A stretch of DNA of 64,000 nt, from positions 124,001-188,000 of the forward strand of contig CBFDEM010000021.1 in the NCBI GenBank assembly GCA_965603825.1, in the 5' to 3' direction. The stretch's first letter is position 1; every line of letters starts with the position of its first letter. The notes beneath the pieces were generated by a model. That model was not told where the DNA came from. It did not search any database and worked only from the letters and a program-made list of their open reading frames with translations. This DNA is from Blepharisma stoltei ATCC 30299 (Eukaryota > Protista > Ciliophora). Shown in pieces: positions 6,998 through 15,776 of the stretch. A program made the translations under genes and the position numbers.

Positions 6998-8963
6998 TTA
7001 GTTAGTGCTTCCTTCTGTAGCAAATGCTGGATAAGTGCATTGGACATTTTCCCAGGTCATTTGGCTAAATACTAATTTTTGTATAACTTTACCGACATTT
7101 TCAAGAGGGATCCTTACTTGAGTCATGCTTAAAGTTTCTCTGAGGGTTACGGTATGGTCGCTAACCGTTTGGAAATCAACTGTGACTGCAAAAGGAATTC
7201 CAATTTCGTCACATCTGGCGTATTTCTTCCCTATGGTGGTTGAGGAGTCGTCGACTTCACATGAAAGACTTTTCCTTTTGATGGTTTCTTTTAGTTGGTC
7301 TACAAATTGGTCGAAATCTGGGTTCTTTGAGAGGGGAAGAACACAACATTTTACAGGGGCAATGACTGGAGGAATATACAAATAGCTTCGAGCCTCTTTT
7401 ACGTTGGTTCTCTCTCTGAAAGCGTGCTCCAAAATGGAATAAATAATTCTTCCAATACCAAAAGAAGGTTCAATTACTGATGGATAAAAGGTTTCTTGGG
7501 ACACTGACTTTTGAGTGACTTCTGGCTTAATCATATCTCTTGTCAGCTTAAAGGACTCCTCCCCAATTGTCAGCTCATATTCACCATGCTCTTCTATGGC
7601 ATGCTTAATGCTTGCTTTTTCCAGCTCAGAAAGCTCTTGGAATTTCGCCAAAATTAATTGATTTTTCGCTTTAAAAGCAGCACCCATGACCCCTTTATTA
7701 GGCTTCATATCAATAAAATCTACGATTCTTGGCTGTGGGTAAGTTTCAGCTGCCAAAAGATTTTTTTTGGATTTTTCTGCATGTTTAGTTAAGTCATAGC
7801 AGCTTCTATCTGCATGGCCAACAACCTCGACCCAGCCAATTGATAATAAGATTTCAGCATCCCAACAGTCAGATGAATAATGGGCCATTTCGTCTTTCAT
7901 GTGTTGTCTAAATCGGATCCCTTCTGCCTTGATCCCGCAAGCTCTTAAGAATAAGTAAGTTCTGGCCATAAAATATGCTAAAGTCTGGTTATTGATGATT
8001 TTCCTTGTAACAGCTTCTTCTAATGTAATATAAATAGGTGGCGTCTGCAATTCTTGCTGCTCTTGCCCGAATAGCGGTATAACCATTGCCGCAACATTTT
8101 GGAACTTATGATGATCTTTATTGCTTGGATTTACAAAGTACTCAATTTCTGCCATTGTAAATTCCCTCACCCTCAGCAGTCCATCCCTAGGCGAAATTTC
8201 ATTCCTAAACCCAAGTCCAATCTGTGCTACTGCAAACGGTAGTTTATTCCTATTATAGTCATATAAATTCTTAAAATTCACAAAAATCCCTTGAGCTGTT
8301 TCTGGCCTTAAAAATCCTTTTTGTCTGCCAGAAGGCCCAATCATAGTCCCAAACATCAAATTAAACGGTTTCGGATACGACAGCGGCCTGCCACTCCCTG
8401 GACATTTAATTCCAAACCTAGTGAAAATTTCATGCAACTGTTCTTCCTTATACGTGTCAGCTAATGATTTGATTTTTCTGCATTCTTCTTTGACCTCTTC
8501 TGTGGTGTCTTTATTGTTAATGATTTCCTTCATGCTTTCTACTAGCAGCTTGTCAGCTCTCCAACACCTGTCGTCTTCTTCATCTTTGACCATAAAATCT
8601 GTGAATTTCGCTACATGTCCTGATGCCTCTAAAACGACTTCTGGGGTCAAATTGGTCCCAGCCAGCTCTAGCATGTCTTCTTCTAGTATAAAATGCTGCC
8701 TCCAGAGGTCTTCTACCTCACGTTTTAAGGCACATCCAGGTGGGCCATAATCAAAGAGACCGCTGATTCCACCATAAATTTCAAAGGAAGGCCGGTAAAA
8801 GAACCTTCGACGTAGCAAATCATCAATAGCTGGCCGATGGGCAGACAAGAATGACTCAAGCTCGCCTTCTTTCTATAATAGAACTTACCAGTTCTTCTTG
8901 ACTGTTCATTTTATAAAGCCCACAGAAAGAAGGGAATTTTTGCATGGCTTTACGGATTAGCAT
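6998..8963 (-). CDS. GARS1: Glycyl-tRNA synthetase (eukaryotic alpha2 type); starts at 8963 (long form) and 8909 (short form); 16-nt intron at 8873-8888
   Basis: FEIYGGISGLFDYGPPG, FNLMF, LRPETAQGIF, FRNEISPR.GLLRVREF, VIEPSFGIGR, anticodon-binding domain. Splicing the 16-nt intron links MNSQEEL to KEGELESFLSAHRP in frame. Confidence 0.95.
8873..8888 (-). other. 16-nt spliceosomal intron (GlyRS)
   Basis: GTAAGTTCTATTATAG; required to connect an ATG to the GlyRS frame. Confidence 0.85.
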
Positions 8964-9701: not shown

Positions 9702-12131
9702 ATGGCTGACTCTTTTCCTTCCACAACCTCCCAGTTATATAATGCTCTAAAGATTAGTTCTGAATATATTCTTCAGAGGTTGCCTAAAGCTGAAGTTTCA
9801 ATCATATTAGGAAGCGGAATTACTGAATTTTATTTAAGAATAGAAAACTTGCAAGGGATTCCTTTCCACGACATTCCTTATCTTCCAGTCCCAACAGTAT
9901 CAGGCCACAAAGGGACTTTATATCATGGCACAATCCATGGTAAACCTATTTTTTGTTGGGGCGGGAGACTTCATGGCTATGAAGGGTACAGTAATTTTCA
10001 GATTTCTTATATAGCCCATCTCAGTGCATTTTTAGGCTGCAATACTCTTATTTTAACCAACGCTTCCGGTTGCTCAATGCCAGGTGTCAAACCTGGAGAT
10101 ATTGTCTTATTAAAAGACTATATAAAACAATTTGGTCGAAATCCTTTAGACACAGGTCTCCATACTCTTTTCACTGAGCCACATACAAGTTTTGCATTTG
10201 ACGAAGATCTCAGAAAATATGCTATCCAAATAGCAAAACGATTGCCAAATATAACAGTCCATGAAGGAACCTATTTTTGGGTCAGAGGCCCATCATTTGA
10301 AACTCCTTATGAAGTAGAAAGTTACACAGCTTTAGGAGGAGATCTATTTGGGATGAGCACTGTCCCAGAAATTCTGGCTGGCCAAGCTCATGGGATGAGA
10401 GTATTAACAGCTGCAGTCGTCACAAATTTGGCAGCAGGACTTGTAAAGGACGAAATATTGACCCATGAACTTGTAAAAGAGACTATTGCAAAAGTGAAAA
10501 ATGAAATTGAAGAATATTTCATGCAAATTTTGTCAGAATTGCCACCGTTTGAAGGAACTATTCAGACAGAATGGACAAATGATGTAATACCTAGAGCACT
10601 AAACCAAGGAAGAATTGAAATTACTGAAGAACAGATTAGAGCTGCAATAAGATGGCTTAGACAAGTTAATGAAGGCAGACCTAGCCCTACTCTAGCTGTT
10701 GTTATCAACAGTAAACAAAAATTCCGCCTCTCCGAGCTCCGAAAAGTTTACTATTCAGAAATCCCTAATTTCCCTCAAATTTCATATGCATCAAGACAAG
10801 GCTATATTCTTATTGGAGATTTAGCCTCCACAAACCTTATTTTCCTCGTAAATTCAGATTATGAAGGACTAGAAACTTATGAGTCTTACTTTTTAATAAA
10901 AACCTTAATAGGCTTTGGAATTACCCATTTGCATTATATATTCCCAGTACTAAATCTTGATAAAACCGGAATTGTAGGAATTGACGATTATTTTAGTTTG
11001 CATATCAAAGGTTGTGCAGAAGGGTCAAGAAATGATGCTGCCAGGATTACTTCTATAGGAGATCATAGTGTCATGGTTTTTCCAGGGCCAACTTTACCAA
11101 CTGCTGCTGAATATGAGATGGCAAGAAGGCTGAATTTTGATTTAGTCTCTATTTCGTCGACATCTATATTGAGTGAAGCCAGCAATAATGGGCTGCCTCA
11201 TTCTGCAAGCTGCTATAACTGCAACTTTAAGGAAGATTTTTTAACAAATTCTGAGGTTATACAAGCTTTGAGCTTAAATTTGTTTAAAAATTCAAGAGAG
11301 CCACTATTATGATTTCCAAGCCTATATCATAAAGAGGAATTATCAGCATTTAACCATGTTTTAGAGTCTCCTCAAGACTTAGAAATTATTGCAGCAGAAA
11401 TAAAATCAGAATTTTCGCCTATCGCGACCATAATAATTTCAGACACCCTAGGAGAAAGCTTTTTGACCCATTTCCAAGTCACAAAGTCTTACACTTTTGG
11501 CCCTTGGTTTCCTCAAACCTTGCATTTTACCTCAGAAAACTTTATGATCATTAAAGGATCCCCTATCCTTCGCCATGGTGACAAACATCATAAAATGCTT
11601 TTCCCCACATTTTTATCAAATTTACTAAAAATTTCCAAAATATTCATATTTGAAGAAGTCTCAACCTGCAGTGAACATATCCAGCTAGGCAGCTGAATAA
11701 GAATTACTCAACAATGTGGGCTTGCTTTCTTTAATCCGCTATTTGGTCCTAATATAAATCATTGGGGTGTTAGATTCCCTGACATGAGTGCTGCTTTTTC
11801 TTGGAATTTTGACTGGAAATCTGCATTTTTGGCACATGGGATTAATTGTGAGGAAGGAAAACTTGTATATACCTCAAGTGAAAGAGAAGCCCATGGGAGA
11901 GCTCTAGCTAAGGTTGGAAATGTATTAGGTGCTGGGGTGTTAGGAAAAACAGGGCAATATTCAGCAATTATAACTCAGCATAAGCATGCTGAAGAAGAAG
12001 CGAGAAAAGTTTTGTATCTTGGATATGCAAATTATGACCCAATGAGAGACCAACATGCAAGGCAGCCGTCCGATGAGCATTTTCTCGCATTAAAAGAGCT
12101 ATTATTATCCTCAATACCAAAAGTTATCTAA
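9702..12131 (+). CDS. Purine nucleoside phosphorylase (trimeric family) with three tandem PNP-like domains, 809 aa
   Basis: ORFs 9702, 11463 and 11784 share a frame joined by TGA. Domain 1: ILGSG, TVSGH.G, GRLHGYEG, LTNASG, GPSFET, GMSTVPE, VTN. Domain 2: YSEIPNFP, YEG, GPTLPT. Domain 3: NPLFGPNINHWGVRFPDMS. Confidence 0.9.
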
Positions 12132-12203
12132 ATAAGCCAAAATCTTATATTATTCATATAGGTATGATATAATAAATAATTTTTAGTTTATTTAATTTTA
12201 ATT

Positions 12204-15200
12204 ATGCAAAACGACGTTTACAGAAACCCAGAAAAGTCACCTGACTCTTCCCCTTTAAACAACAGGAATTTTTCAAATGAAAATTTAACGGAATTCTCGT
12301 CAAGTCCTTTATTAGTCCCTTTAAGAACCAAATTCAGATCATCTCGAGTCCGAGAAGTAAACGGATGACGAAAACAACGGCCAATTGAAGAGGCAAAAAA
12401 TGAGCTATCAATTGGATCAAACCTGCCTTATCAAGTCCGCAGTAAAAGTGAGATAAATAAAGCCCCAAGGTATCCGCATCATGAAAAGCTACCGAGAATA
12501 ATAGATGTCCCAAGGACAAAACATAATTCCACAAAGCAACAGAAATATGTATCATTTGTGCCTGGAGTCCTGCATGAGTTTCCTTTAGAATCATTAGCAT
12601 CATTTGGAAGTGATGACCATAGGAAATCAGTAGAAAGTGTACTGTATATGTCGCCGAAGTTAAATAGAGAAAATTCAGTGCCTGCACTGACAAGAATAAA
12701 GGACACAAATTTTAAAATAGCTCCTCAGCTGTCAGATATTGAAAGCTCTTATCCTAAAGAATCAATGGATTCTGGAGACATCACAAGCTATATCACAAAA
12801 ATCCAAAATTTAGGATCACTTGAAAGCCAGAGAGCTAGCGGCTCAAAAAAGCATTCAAAAGAATTGAAAGAAACCCCAAGGATTATTTACTCACCTAAAA
12901 AAGTATCAAGAGAGCCTGGAAAATTGTCATATGTAGAATTATACCCATTTTCAGAAAATAACGAATTTATCCATGAAATTCACCAAAAATTCCCTGGGCT
13001 ACACATAGACATTTTGTCAGTGAAGTTCAGAAATCAAGAACTCCAAACCTCGTTTATGGACGAAATTGATAAATCTGCTAAAGAAGAGCTGTTTCATGCC
13101 CTTTTTGACGGAAACTTAGACCGAGAAACCTCTTTTGAGCTTCACCAAGACAAAGCGACTACTTTATTAGATTTATTTTTAAAAGCACTGCTCAAAGGAG
13201 AAATAAAAAATAAAAAAGACGCTCAAGAATTCGTAGATTCCCAGATACAGTCAGGAGTTCTAATAGAAAGAGACTCAATAAGCTCAGCCAAGTCTTCTCA
13301 CAACAGAAGACAGTCAAAATACTTGTTGACACAAACCAAAAGCCTTTCCTCAAATGAAGAAAATATCATGATAAATAACCCAGAGCCAGAAAGAGAAAAA
13401 ACAGCCCCTTGGCTGTCAAGAAATTCTTCTATTAATAACCAAGTGGCTATCCAGCCTAATGTGTCTGATTTATTAAATGTAGAAATCAAAGAAGATTTAT
13501 CATTAGAAGAAGAAAAAACTGTAAGGAGAAACAGCTTGGATACAGTTGAAAATTTTGAAAAAAATATGGCTGAGATTGAAAAAATAAAAGAAAAACATAA
13601 AAGTTTAGTCCCAAATAAGCCAAAACTAGACAGCAAAGAGGAAAATAAATCCCCAGAACTCCCACAGCTTAATATTGAAGGGCAGTCTATTAGTTTTGAA
13701 AGGCGCAGCGACGACTCGAGAGACTCAGAAAAAAAAATTACTGGGTTTTCTAGCAATAGGTCAAGCTCCAGCCCTCTTGCAAAACATCGGCGCATTGACA
13801 GTGCATCTAATTTAGCAGATACTTCTGCTGAGTCTAAAAATTTAAATATATCTATAGTTGGAAATGCAGGTCTTGAAGAAAATAATTCAAAATTTTTAGT
13901 TTTGCCTACAATAAAAAGTGAACAAAATACCCCAGCTGCAGAAAAAAAAGAAATTCCGAAATTTGTGGAAAATGTAGATAGGCTTCAAGCAAGTCCTAGT
14001 AAATCCTCTAAACGCTCTGATAAAGAGATACTTAAATCTGACTCTAGCACAAGGTCAAAATCAGTTAAAAAAAGGGTAGAATTCAGCCAAAAAAGCACGG
14101 TTTCTTCTCCGACAAAGAAAAAAAATACAAAGACGTCAAGATTAAAAACGTCGAAAAATGAAGAAGGAAAAAAAAATAAAAAAAACGAAGGGGATGAAAG
14201 TGAGGAAGGAGAAGAACCAAAGGAAAAAATAAAAGCAATTGATAAATTCATAAAGAATTTCACAGGATCTTTACTAAGTTTAGTACAGCAAGTGAAAGAT
14301 GGAATGTTTGAAGAACATATTTTTGCTGAAAAAGAGCCAGAGGATGAGGTTGAAGAAAGTAATGATAATAAACAAGCTACAGATAATAGCAATTCAGGAA
14401 TAGTGGAAACCGAGATTAGTGTCAATAAAGTAGAAAGTAAAAAGGCAGGTGCAAAAACTAGGAAAATGGTTAAGAAAAAAACGCCTAAGCCAACGGTTAA
14501 AAATAATGAAGAAATACAGAATAAAGAAAAAAAAGAAGAATCGCTAAAAGAAGAAGAAAAAGTTGTGGAGAAAGAAGAAATAGAACAAAACGGAGAAAAC
14601 CCATCAAAAATAAAAAAAGAACCAAAAACTAAAAACCCTGAAAATGCTAAAAAGCGGCCATCTCAATATTTTACTAAAAAACGAGAAAATATACCTATTA
14701 ATTTCCTAAACAACTCAAAGCCCCGTCAAACAGATTCTTCAGAAGGTGAAGTAGAGTTCGACACAAGCCAAGAAAAAGAAAGCATCAGCAGATCTCCAAT
14801 ATCTTCCAGTGCTTCCCCTGTTCACAAAATCGTAAATCCTGCTGAAGAACGTGAAAAGCGAAGCGTTGAATATGAGCTAAAACACATGAATTTAATGAGC
14901 CAAATGGCCAAAGAGCTTTTAGTCTCCCAAAAAGCAATCCCAAACACTTCCAATTTACTAAACTCTGCTAGCTCAGAATTTTTCAAAAACATAACACCTG
15001 CAAAAAAGAGTGCTAGGCAGCCAATTATCCCTCAGATTACTGAAGAATATATATCAGAAGAAGAGGAAAATCCATGAGAAGAAGAAAGAGATGTTGACGA
15101 GGAGCTAGAAATTATGTTCAGAGACAAGAAAACAAGCGTCAAAAAATTCATGTTTTCGCCACCTATACAATACAGATTTCCACAGAAATATGATTTAGCA

Positions 15201-15776
15201 CAAGAGGTTAATTTGAATGAAATTGCAGTTTCCAATCAAAATGTAGACCCAGAAGTTATGGAAACTCATTTAAGTAAACAAAAATTTTTAGAAGACACTA
15301 TAAAAATAGCTGAATATAAAGATTATGCTAAAAAACAAAAAGGTCTTTTATATGTGGTAAATATCAATGAAAAAGCCCCTGACGAACAAAAACGAGAATG
15401 GAGAAGAGACTACGAAAAAAAGAAAAAACGTGAAAAAGAGCGAAGAAGCAAAACAAATTCTTCTGGGGTAACCTTAAGAGGCAAACCTAAAATTACGTTT
15501 AGTGGCTTAGAAGAGTCAAAAGTTGAGAAAAAGCACAGAATGCTACAAGCTTCAAGGTCTATAAGCTGCAGTGATATAGAAATTATCAAAAGTGGAGGCG
15601 CTTTAGATGTAAAAAGTGAAATGGAAGCTAAAGAAAGGATTTATTGTAGGCTGAAAGGAGTTTTCGATCTTAATTCACTTAAGGGAGAATTCAGAGAAAG
15701 AAACTGGATTCCAAACAATTTCAAAGAAAATTTGGAAAGAATAAATTCTGTATTACAGTTTCCTACATGTCGTTAA
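12204..15776 (+). CDS. Large low-complexity K/E/S-rich hypothetical protein (~1190 aa)
   Basis: ATG at 12204 is in frame with ORFs 12558 and 15114, which are joined by TGA; ends in TAA. Confidence 0.75.

Follow-up and report, generated by a model that had tools for sequence, protein, structure and literature searches.

Why the trimeric type of purine nucleoside phosphorylase (PNP), a heavily studied drug target, works as a trimer is still debated between scaffolding and catalytic cooperation, and its one-third-the-sites inhibition is part of that debate. A gene of the ciliate Blepharisma stoltei ATCC 30299 raises the question in a different form: what has become of the active sites and subunit contacts of such a trimer in a protein that appears to carry all three subunits in a single chain? 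The window, that is, the whole stretch of 64,000 nucleotides analyzed here (contig CBFDEM010000021.1, positions 124,001 to 188,000), contains this gene at positions 9702 to 12131. A first-pass annotation made from the letters alone had proposed that it encodes three fused PNP units with one active site in domain 1 that is capped by domain 3. Our results make it likely that the protein is indeed a PNP of the trimeric type (NP-I, inosine/guanosine class) in the form of a single-chain pseudo-trimer, with its domains specialized in this manner, based on the three PNP-derived domains, the single intact site, the recurrence of this pattern throughout a protein family, and an uninterrupted transcript-like contig. 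The gene and its domains are arranged as follows.

9702..12131, plus strand: whole gene, one of three genomic paralogs (paralog A), 809 codons plus TAA, an intron-less open reading frame (ORF) with TGA read as tryptophan
9702..10565, plus strand: domain 1, catalytically intact trimeric-type PNP, amino acids 1-288, with Pfam, NCBIfam, and phmmer matches
10599..11300, plus strand: domain 2, dead PNP-derived domain, about amino acids 300-533, from a profile match, residue tables, and a model
11337..12128, plus strand: domain 3, PNP fold without catalytic residues but with the donor loop, amino acids 546-809

That domain 1 is a trimeric-type PNP is beyond doubt. It matches Pfam PF01048 (PNP_UDP_1) at 1e-38 (133.5 bits; cut-off, 25.1), passes the PNP equivalog cut-off of NCBIfam NF006054 (227 bits; cut-off, 218), and exceeds that of TIGR01697, the inosine-guanosine-xanthosine phosphorylase family (208 bits; cut-off, 197), and in the PDB it matches the Clostridium perfringens PNP 8swu (phmmer, 2e-52). 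The catalytic motifs and the inter-subunit loop of this domain lie at the following positions.

9807-9821, plus strand: motif LGSGI
9900-9914, plus strand: motif SGHKG
9963-9986, plus strand: motif GRLHGYEG
10056-10070, plus strand: motif TNASG
10140..10202, plus strand: diverged inter-subunit loop, NPLDTGLHTLFTEPHTSFAFD, placed by alignment to 8swu
10287-10304, plus strand: motif GPSFET
10350-10370, plus strand: motif GMSTVPE
10416-10427, plus strand: motif VVTN

Residue mapping (human PNP numbering is used throughout) bears out the claim that domain 1 keeps all catalytic motifs, as the set for phosphate, ribose, and base is complete in the window protein: S33, H64, R84, H86, Y88, E89, A116, G118, F200, E201, M219, S220, T242, N243, and H257 are all present. 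In the numbering of the window protein itself, human His86, Tyr88, and Phe200 correspond to His91, Tyr92, and Phe198. The accompanying claim that this domain has lost its inter-subunit loop was right in part; the GPN and RFPDMS elements are gone, with Pro-His-Thr in place of the Arg-Phe-Pro around the Phe159 position, but NPL and the length of the loop are retained. Asn243 together with Glu201 marks the 6-oxopurine-specific PNPs in established PNP enzymology, and the presence of both residues in domain 1 predicts this specificity for the Blepharisma protein.

Domains 2 and 3 have diverged much further. Domain 2 has neither its catalytic residues nor the Phe159 loop, which is deleted along with the helix after it, while E89-G90 and G197-P198...E205 are retained. 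NF006054 recognizes domain 2 of the window protein over profile positions 5-110 (E-value, 3e-8), and TIGR01700 recognizes domain 3 in its second half over profile positions 108-200 (E-value, 7e-7); because these NCBIfam scores are far under the cut-offs, we regard both as derived domains and not as PNP members themselves. The expectation that Pfam PNP_UDP_1 would give three hits was disappointed, as only domain 1 matched when pieces of the window protein were searched, while a relative, P0013, does have three PNP_UDP_1 stretches in its own sequence. BLASTP comparison of domain 1 of the window protein with its domains 2 and 3 gave no match, and hhalign with profiles of only the three B. stoltei paralogs left domains 1 and 3 unmatched in global mode and paired domains 1 and 2 at an E-value of 9.5e-5. 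Family-wide profiles were needed, and those built from 19 members align with four ordinary PNPs at 99.8% probability for domain 2 (E-value, 7e-30) and 99.95% for domain 3 (E-value, 8e-38), both alignments being colinear over more than 200 columns. Together with the NCBIfam matches and the structural model of a paralog described below, these comparisons confirm that three PNP-derived units share one chain. What domain 3 retains is the loop that domains 1 and 2 have altered or lost.

11733..11789, plus strand: donor loop of domain 3, NPLFGPNINHWGVRFPDMS, in which Phe692 (11775-11777; Phe694 in paralog B) corresponds to Phe159 of human PNP

The same division of labor recurs in the 19 members, which come from six lineages (ciliates, Rhizaria, CRuMs, Amoebozoa, Breviatea, and Metamonada). 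Their first domains are invariant or nearly so at S33, H64, R84, H86, Y88, E89, N115, A116, G118, F/Y200, E201, T202, M219, S220, T221, E224, and N243, and yet none of the 19 has Phe in the Phe159 column, where H, Y, N, G, V, I, S, or L stands instead. The catalytic set is gone from all domains 2, where the Phe159 segment is deleted as well, and it is likewise gone from domains 3, which keep Phe159 in 19/19 members, Arg158 in 17/19, Pro160 in 16/19, and both Gly149 and Gly156 in 19/19. Judged from these residues, there is one intact catalytic site, in domain 1, and the donor Phe loop is conserved in domain 3 only. The family thus agrees with the first-pass annotation in that domain 2 is degenerate for both the catalytic motifs and the loop and domain 3 lacks the motifs yet carries the loop. 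A regulatory role for the two dead sites, which had also been suggested, found no support; the conservation of domain 2 is confined to interface and structural residues.

For a structural view, paralog B (P0046), whose sequence is 49.7% identical to that of the window protein, was folded with AlphaFold from a family alignment of 25 rows. The resulting model shows a mean predicted local distance difference test (pLDDT) score of 87.5 and a predicted template modeling (pTM) score of 0.89 over 805 residues, and it predicts a compact fold in which the domains are confidently placed relative to each other, joined by linkers of about 25-30 residues with a pLDDT of 60-77. Domain 1 of paralog B superposes on human PNP with a Z score of 32.0 (root mean square deviation [rmsd], 2.0 Å over 276 residues) and domain 3, taken from a separate model of domains 2 and 3, on PNP 8swu with a Z score of 26.5 (rmsd, 2.5 Å over 243 residues, spanning chain residues 1-271), while an ESM-Atlas fold search returned a match at the level of domain 1 only. 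Domains 2 and 3 modeled alone reach a pLDDT of 88.9 and a pTM of 0.88, and the pLDDT of the domain 3 loop differs between the full-length and the two-domain model by -7, -8, -1, and +9 per ten-residue block, changes too small and mixed to bear on a contact with domain 1, for which this comparison was meant as a proxy. In domain 2 (pLDDT, about 90-95), the order of helices and strands is that of domains 1 and 3, minus the loop and the following helix. That both diverged domains adopt the PNP fold is therefore upheld by superposition for domain 3, whereas for domain 2 the argument comes from secondary-structure order, pLDDT, and the profile match only.

Which neighbor the domain 3 loop serves is the point on which the proposed mechanism turns. 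In calf PNP, the interface consists mainly of loop 141-168 of one subunit and segments 87-91 and 196-205 of its neighbor, and Phe159 is the sole active-site residue that passes from one subunit to the other (PMC9916683). For each domain, we scored the conservation of 15 donor-loop and 13 acceptor-patch positions by counting how many of the 19 members share the most frequent residue at a position and averaging these counts.

Domain 1: donor loop 11.3, acceptor patch 15.0
Domain 2: donor loop 4.9, acceptor patch 13.1
Domain 3: donor loop 15.1, acceptor patch 6.9

Because the scores pair alike (15.1 with 15.0, 11.3 with 13.1, and 4.9 with 6.9), a ring in which domain 3 donates to domain 1, domain 1 to domain 2, and domain 2 to domain 3 is favored, and these three data pairs clearly prefer the site of domain 1 over that of domain 2 as the one most likely capped by the domain 3 loop. 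With the opposite handedness, the domain 3 loop would lie on dead domain 2 as interface glue, while the site of domain 1 would face the deleted loop of domain 2 and lack a Phe lid. Linkers of this length permit either order, the acceptor patch of domain 2 (G197-P198...E205) is fairly conserved at 13.1/19, and a human Phe159Ala enzyme that remains active with an interface predicted to be destabilized by 2-3 kcal/mol (PMC9916683) is what a gluing role of the loop would lead one to expect. We nevertheless consider this arrangement unlikely, as it would bring the NPL-Asp loop of domain 1 (11.3/19) to the least conserved patch, that of domain 3 (6.9/19), would place the only live site opposite a deleted loop, and would leave the invariant Phe of domain 3 unexplained while the same column in domain 1 varies freely. 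A further alternative is domain swapping between chains, for example with three chains forming three mixed trimers, in which case the modeled ring would reflect a bias of AlphaFold, which was given one chain and is blind to intermolecular options; the long, flexible linkers would allow it. The high pTM of both the full-length and the two-domain model speaks against such swapping, as do the strict asymmetry of one live site and one live loop, which is expected of a closed 1:1:1 ring, and the precedent of a fused pseudo-heterotrimer in the Drosophila virilis dUTPase (PMC12524310), so that we rate this possibility as quite improbable.

All of this presupposes that the chain is translated through two in-frame TGA codons, the first of which, under the standard or bacterial code, ends the ORF at 11312 and would leave a two-domain protein of 536 residues, with domain 3 either a relic that is not translated or a product of its own.

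11310..11312, plus strand: in-frame TGA, Trp537 (codon 537), in the linker between domains 2 and 3, spanned by the contigs
11694..11696, plus strand: in-frame TGA, Trp665 (codon 665), inside domain 3; paralog B has TGA in the same column

Such a truncation has next to nothing to recommend it. In B. stoltei, UGA is reassigned to tryptophan, and introns are tiny, at 15-16 bp (PMC9942806). Conserved tryptophan columns, for example, those of 'WG.RFP' and 'YFWVRGP', have TGA in paralogs B and C where the window gene has TGG, and because the TGA codons of these paralogs align with TGG at conserved tryptophans, we read TGA as Trp here as well. The window is gene-dense only with TGA as sense, and its long frames nearly all end in TAA or TAG. 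The in-frame domain 3 is conserved among all paralogs as well as orthologues from standard-code organisms, and paralog B is annotated by NCBI at 805 amino acids. Moreover, four runs of one study each yield one contig colinear with the gene (2392-2454 nucleotides, spanning 9710/9764 to 12152/12156), with zero differences, indels, or joints. These contigs end about 25 nucleotides past the TAA, leave the intergenic DNA on either side of the gene uncovered, and fit one intron-less mRNA across both TGA codons. The frame of 809 codons, from the ATG at 9702 to the TAA at 12129-12131, therefore stands as first read, with its coordinates and motifs exact, and termination at TGA 11310, which had been named as a way in which the proposal could fail, is contradicted. 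A reading as three genes, or as a tandem array joined in error, was also considered and rejected, given that orthologues, paralogs, and contigs all present one frame and one transcript. As a side observation, the Trp665 column is TGA in paralogs A and B (codon 690 of L002) even though these are only about 50% identical, while at other conserved tryptophans some paralogs use TGG where others use TGA.

Several points weigh against our interpretation. The human Phe159Ala exchange is reported to leave activity almost unaltered (PMC9916683), and the invariant Phe of domain 3 may for this reason serve the stability of the lid or interface as much as catalysis. The contact between this Phe and the pocket of domain 1 is derived from conservation and the published interface and not from coordinates, the structural model is that of paralog B and not of the window protein (all three paralogs have TGA in domain 3), and the structure searches with domains 2 and 3 aligned PNP chains to domain 3 but none to domain 2 among the matches listed, which domain 3 filled and in which domain 2 drew only PAC2/Pba-like chains with a fold of the same broad type (Z scores, 7.6-9.2). 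That the four covering runs are RNA is a guess that is not on record, and because the library type is uncertain, the contigs are support rather than proof. The phosphorolytic activity discussed next is likewise a prediction from sequence.

With these points in mind, the single-chain pseudo-trimer may be pictured as follows. The gene of an ancestral homotrimer would have gone through a single triplication and fusion at an early stage of eukaryote evolution. Domain 1 would be the sole catalytic domain and would carry out the phosphorolysis of 6-oxopurine nucleosides for purine salvage. Domain 3 would act as a dead scaffold whose long loop supplies Phe692 to complete the aromatic lid of the neighboring active site, most likely that of domain 1. 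Domain 2 would be a second dead scaffold that lost its own loop but kept the patch for the loop of domain 1, so that the ring is closed. We infer from this a monomeric, enzymatically active protein with the ring order domain 3, domain 1, domain 2.

The genome holds three triple-PNP paralogs that are 45-50% identical, and only one other PF01048 gene was found, which encodes a uridine-phosphorylase-like protein of 296 amino acids.

L002:607-3024 = G000:C21:556232-558649: paralog B (P0046), 805 amino acids, an NCBI/UniRef entry named purine-nucleoside phosphorylase
L003:598-3000, G000:C22: paralog C, a three-domain PNP
L007 1378-2268, G000:C46:361115-361774 region, minus strand: uridine-phosphorylase-like gene, PF01048

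Among the paralogs, the window protein adheres most closely to the canonical residues. In domain 1 of paralog C, the exchanges Y88M, T202M, T221A, and H257E have occurred and a short stretch after Asn243 is deleted, and to judge from these residues paralog C may have an altered specificity or be on its way to inactivity. A six-frame search of the genome, in which counts are lower bounds, detected no MTAP and no single-domain trimeric-type PNP; in the apparent absence of the latter, B. stoltei seems to have the triple proteins as its PNPs.

Beyond Blepharisma, a word-index protein search with the domain 2 region found nothing, and it was an exhaustive HMMER search of representative sequences with domain 2 that recovered the family. 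Together with a profile search, it returned full-length relatives of 770-930 amino acids that, by their source names, belong to Stentor coeruleus (OMJ78353 / A0A1R2BNE8), Lapot gusevi, Diphylleia rotans, Dermamoeba algensis, Pygsuia biforma, Anaeramoeba ignava, and Tritrichomonas foetus, as well as several transcriptome or metagenome sequences. The survey of orthologues that the first-pass annotation had called for thus reveals the same design in Stentor and in distant protists. It also narrows the claim that the protein is invisible under the standard code, which is true only when the raw genome sequence is read; paralog B already has a database entry of 805 residues, and Stentor, Tritrichomonas, and Anaeramoeba, which use the standard code, carry annotated orthologues. 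One further orthologue, P0002 (804 amino acids), lies on the 135-kb environmental contig L009 (ENA ERZ781357 NODE_24), has zero in-frame TGA codons, and is closely flanked by a COX15-CtaA gene and others; its source is probably an uncultured heterotrich-like ciliate in which TGA is a stop codon or is avoided.

In a quick maximum-likelihood tree of the 57 domains of the 19 members and four ordinary PNPs, the first, second, and third domains each form one group, with Shimodaira-Hasegawa-like approximate likelihood ratio test (SH-aLRT) supports of 99, 97, and 100, respectively, and the branches of domains 2 and 3 are several times longer than those of domain 1. The grouping of each domain with its counterparts points to a single triplication before the split of these lineages, while horizontal spread among eukaryotes may account for the distribution instead of an old common triplication. 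It is tempting, if rather doubtful, to go further and see in this protein an ancient solution to purine salvage, possibly as old as the last eukaryotic common ancestor, in which one working site and one lid suffice and the dead pockets perhaps sense a ligand (nucleoside or phosphate) or offer docking surfaces for other salvage enzymes.

The family can be regarded as a natural experiment in which long selection kept one site, one donor loop, and the ring while the rest decayed, and it may thereby reveal which parts of the trimer are indispensable. A PNP scaffold that would be naturally monomeric and single-site could be of use to enzymology and biocatalysis, and the protein is likely the enzyme on which heterotrich ciliates depend for purine-nucleoside salvage, while for parabasalids, among them Tritrichomonas foetus, it offers a candidate of the PNP type. 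Its neighbors in the window are the following.

6998-8848, minus strand: upstream neighbor, class II aminoacyl-tRNA synthetase, 616 amino acids, with tRNA-synt_2b core and HGTP anticodon-binding domain and no TGA
12180-15776, plus strand: downstream ORF of about 1198 codons with TGA read as Trp; its 839-residue TGA-free part has no Pfam match at an E-value of 0.001

Known systems show how far this architecture departs from its relatives. With the homotrimeric NP-I PNPs (human and calf; 1ULA, 1A9S, and 3K8O), the Blepharisma protein shares the fold and full catalytic set of domain 1, the fold of domain 3, and the Phe159 inter-subunit loop that is still recognizable there. It differs in being one chain of three diverged domains and not three identical chains, in having one active site instead of three, in the separation of site and donor loop into different domains, and in a domain 2 without the loop. 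Functionally, it would resemble a PNP trimer in which two sites are switched off. Because a homotrimer with three sites, the defining feature of the class, is absent, we do not consider it an ordinary PNP member. A phmmer search of the PDB returned no matching chain longer than 373 residues, and a full-text literature search, outside which most subscription journals lie, found no tandem, triplicated, or pseudo-trimeric PNP. The architecture thus apparently has not been described, as the first-pass annotation had supposed, but the proteins themselves are in the databases, annotated automatically as plain purine-nucleoside phosphorylase.

Single chains with threefold pseudosymmetry exist elsewhere. 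Cyanuric acid hydrolase and barbiturase consist of three homologous domains with pseudo-threefold symmetry and one active site, which sits on the pseudo-threefold axis and draws residues from all three domains; the fold is unrelated to that of PNP, and we know of no free-standing homotrimeric ancestor of these enzymes. The monomeric dUTPase of herpesviruses (Epstein-Barr virus, 2BSY) follows the same principle of divided labor as the PNP fusion; it arose by duplication and fusion of the subunit of a trimeric enzyme and by motif loss, and its domains jointly build a single site, but there are two of them, of an unrelated fold and in viruses only (PMC12524310). The other near precedent is the dUTPase of Drosophila virilis, in which a homotrimer gene was triplicated and fused to give a single chain with a trimer-like body, termed a 'pseudo-heterotrimer' (PMC12524310). 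That protein has a jelly-roll fold and near-identical domains, is lineage-restricted, and is not described as single-site, whereas the fused PNP is of ancient origin, occurs widely among protists, and has strongly unequal domains. It presents a neat case of subfunctionalization within a fused homo-oligomer, apparently new to the literature.

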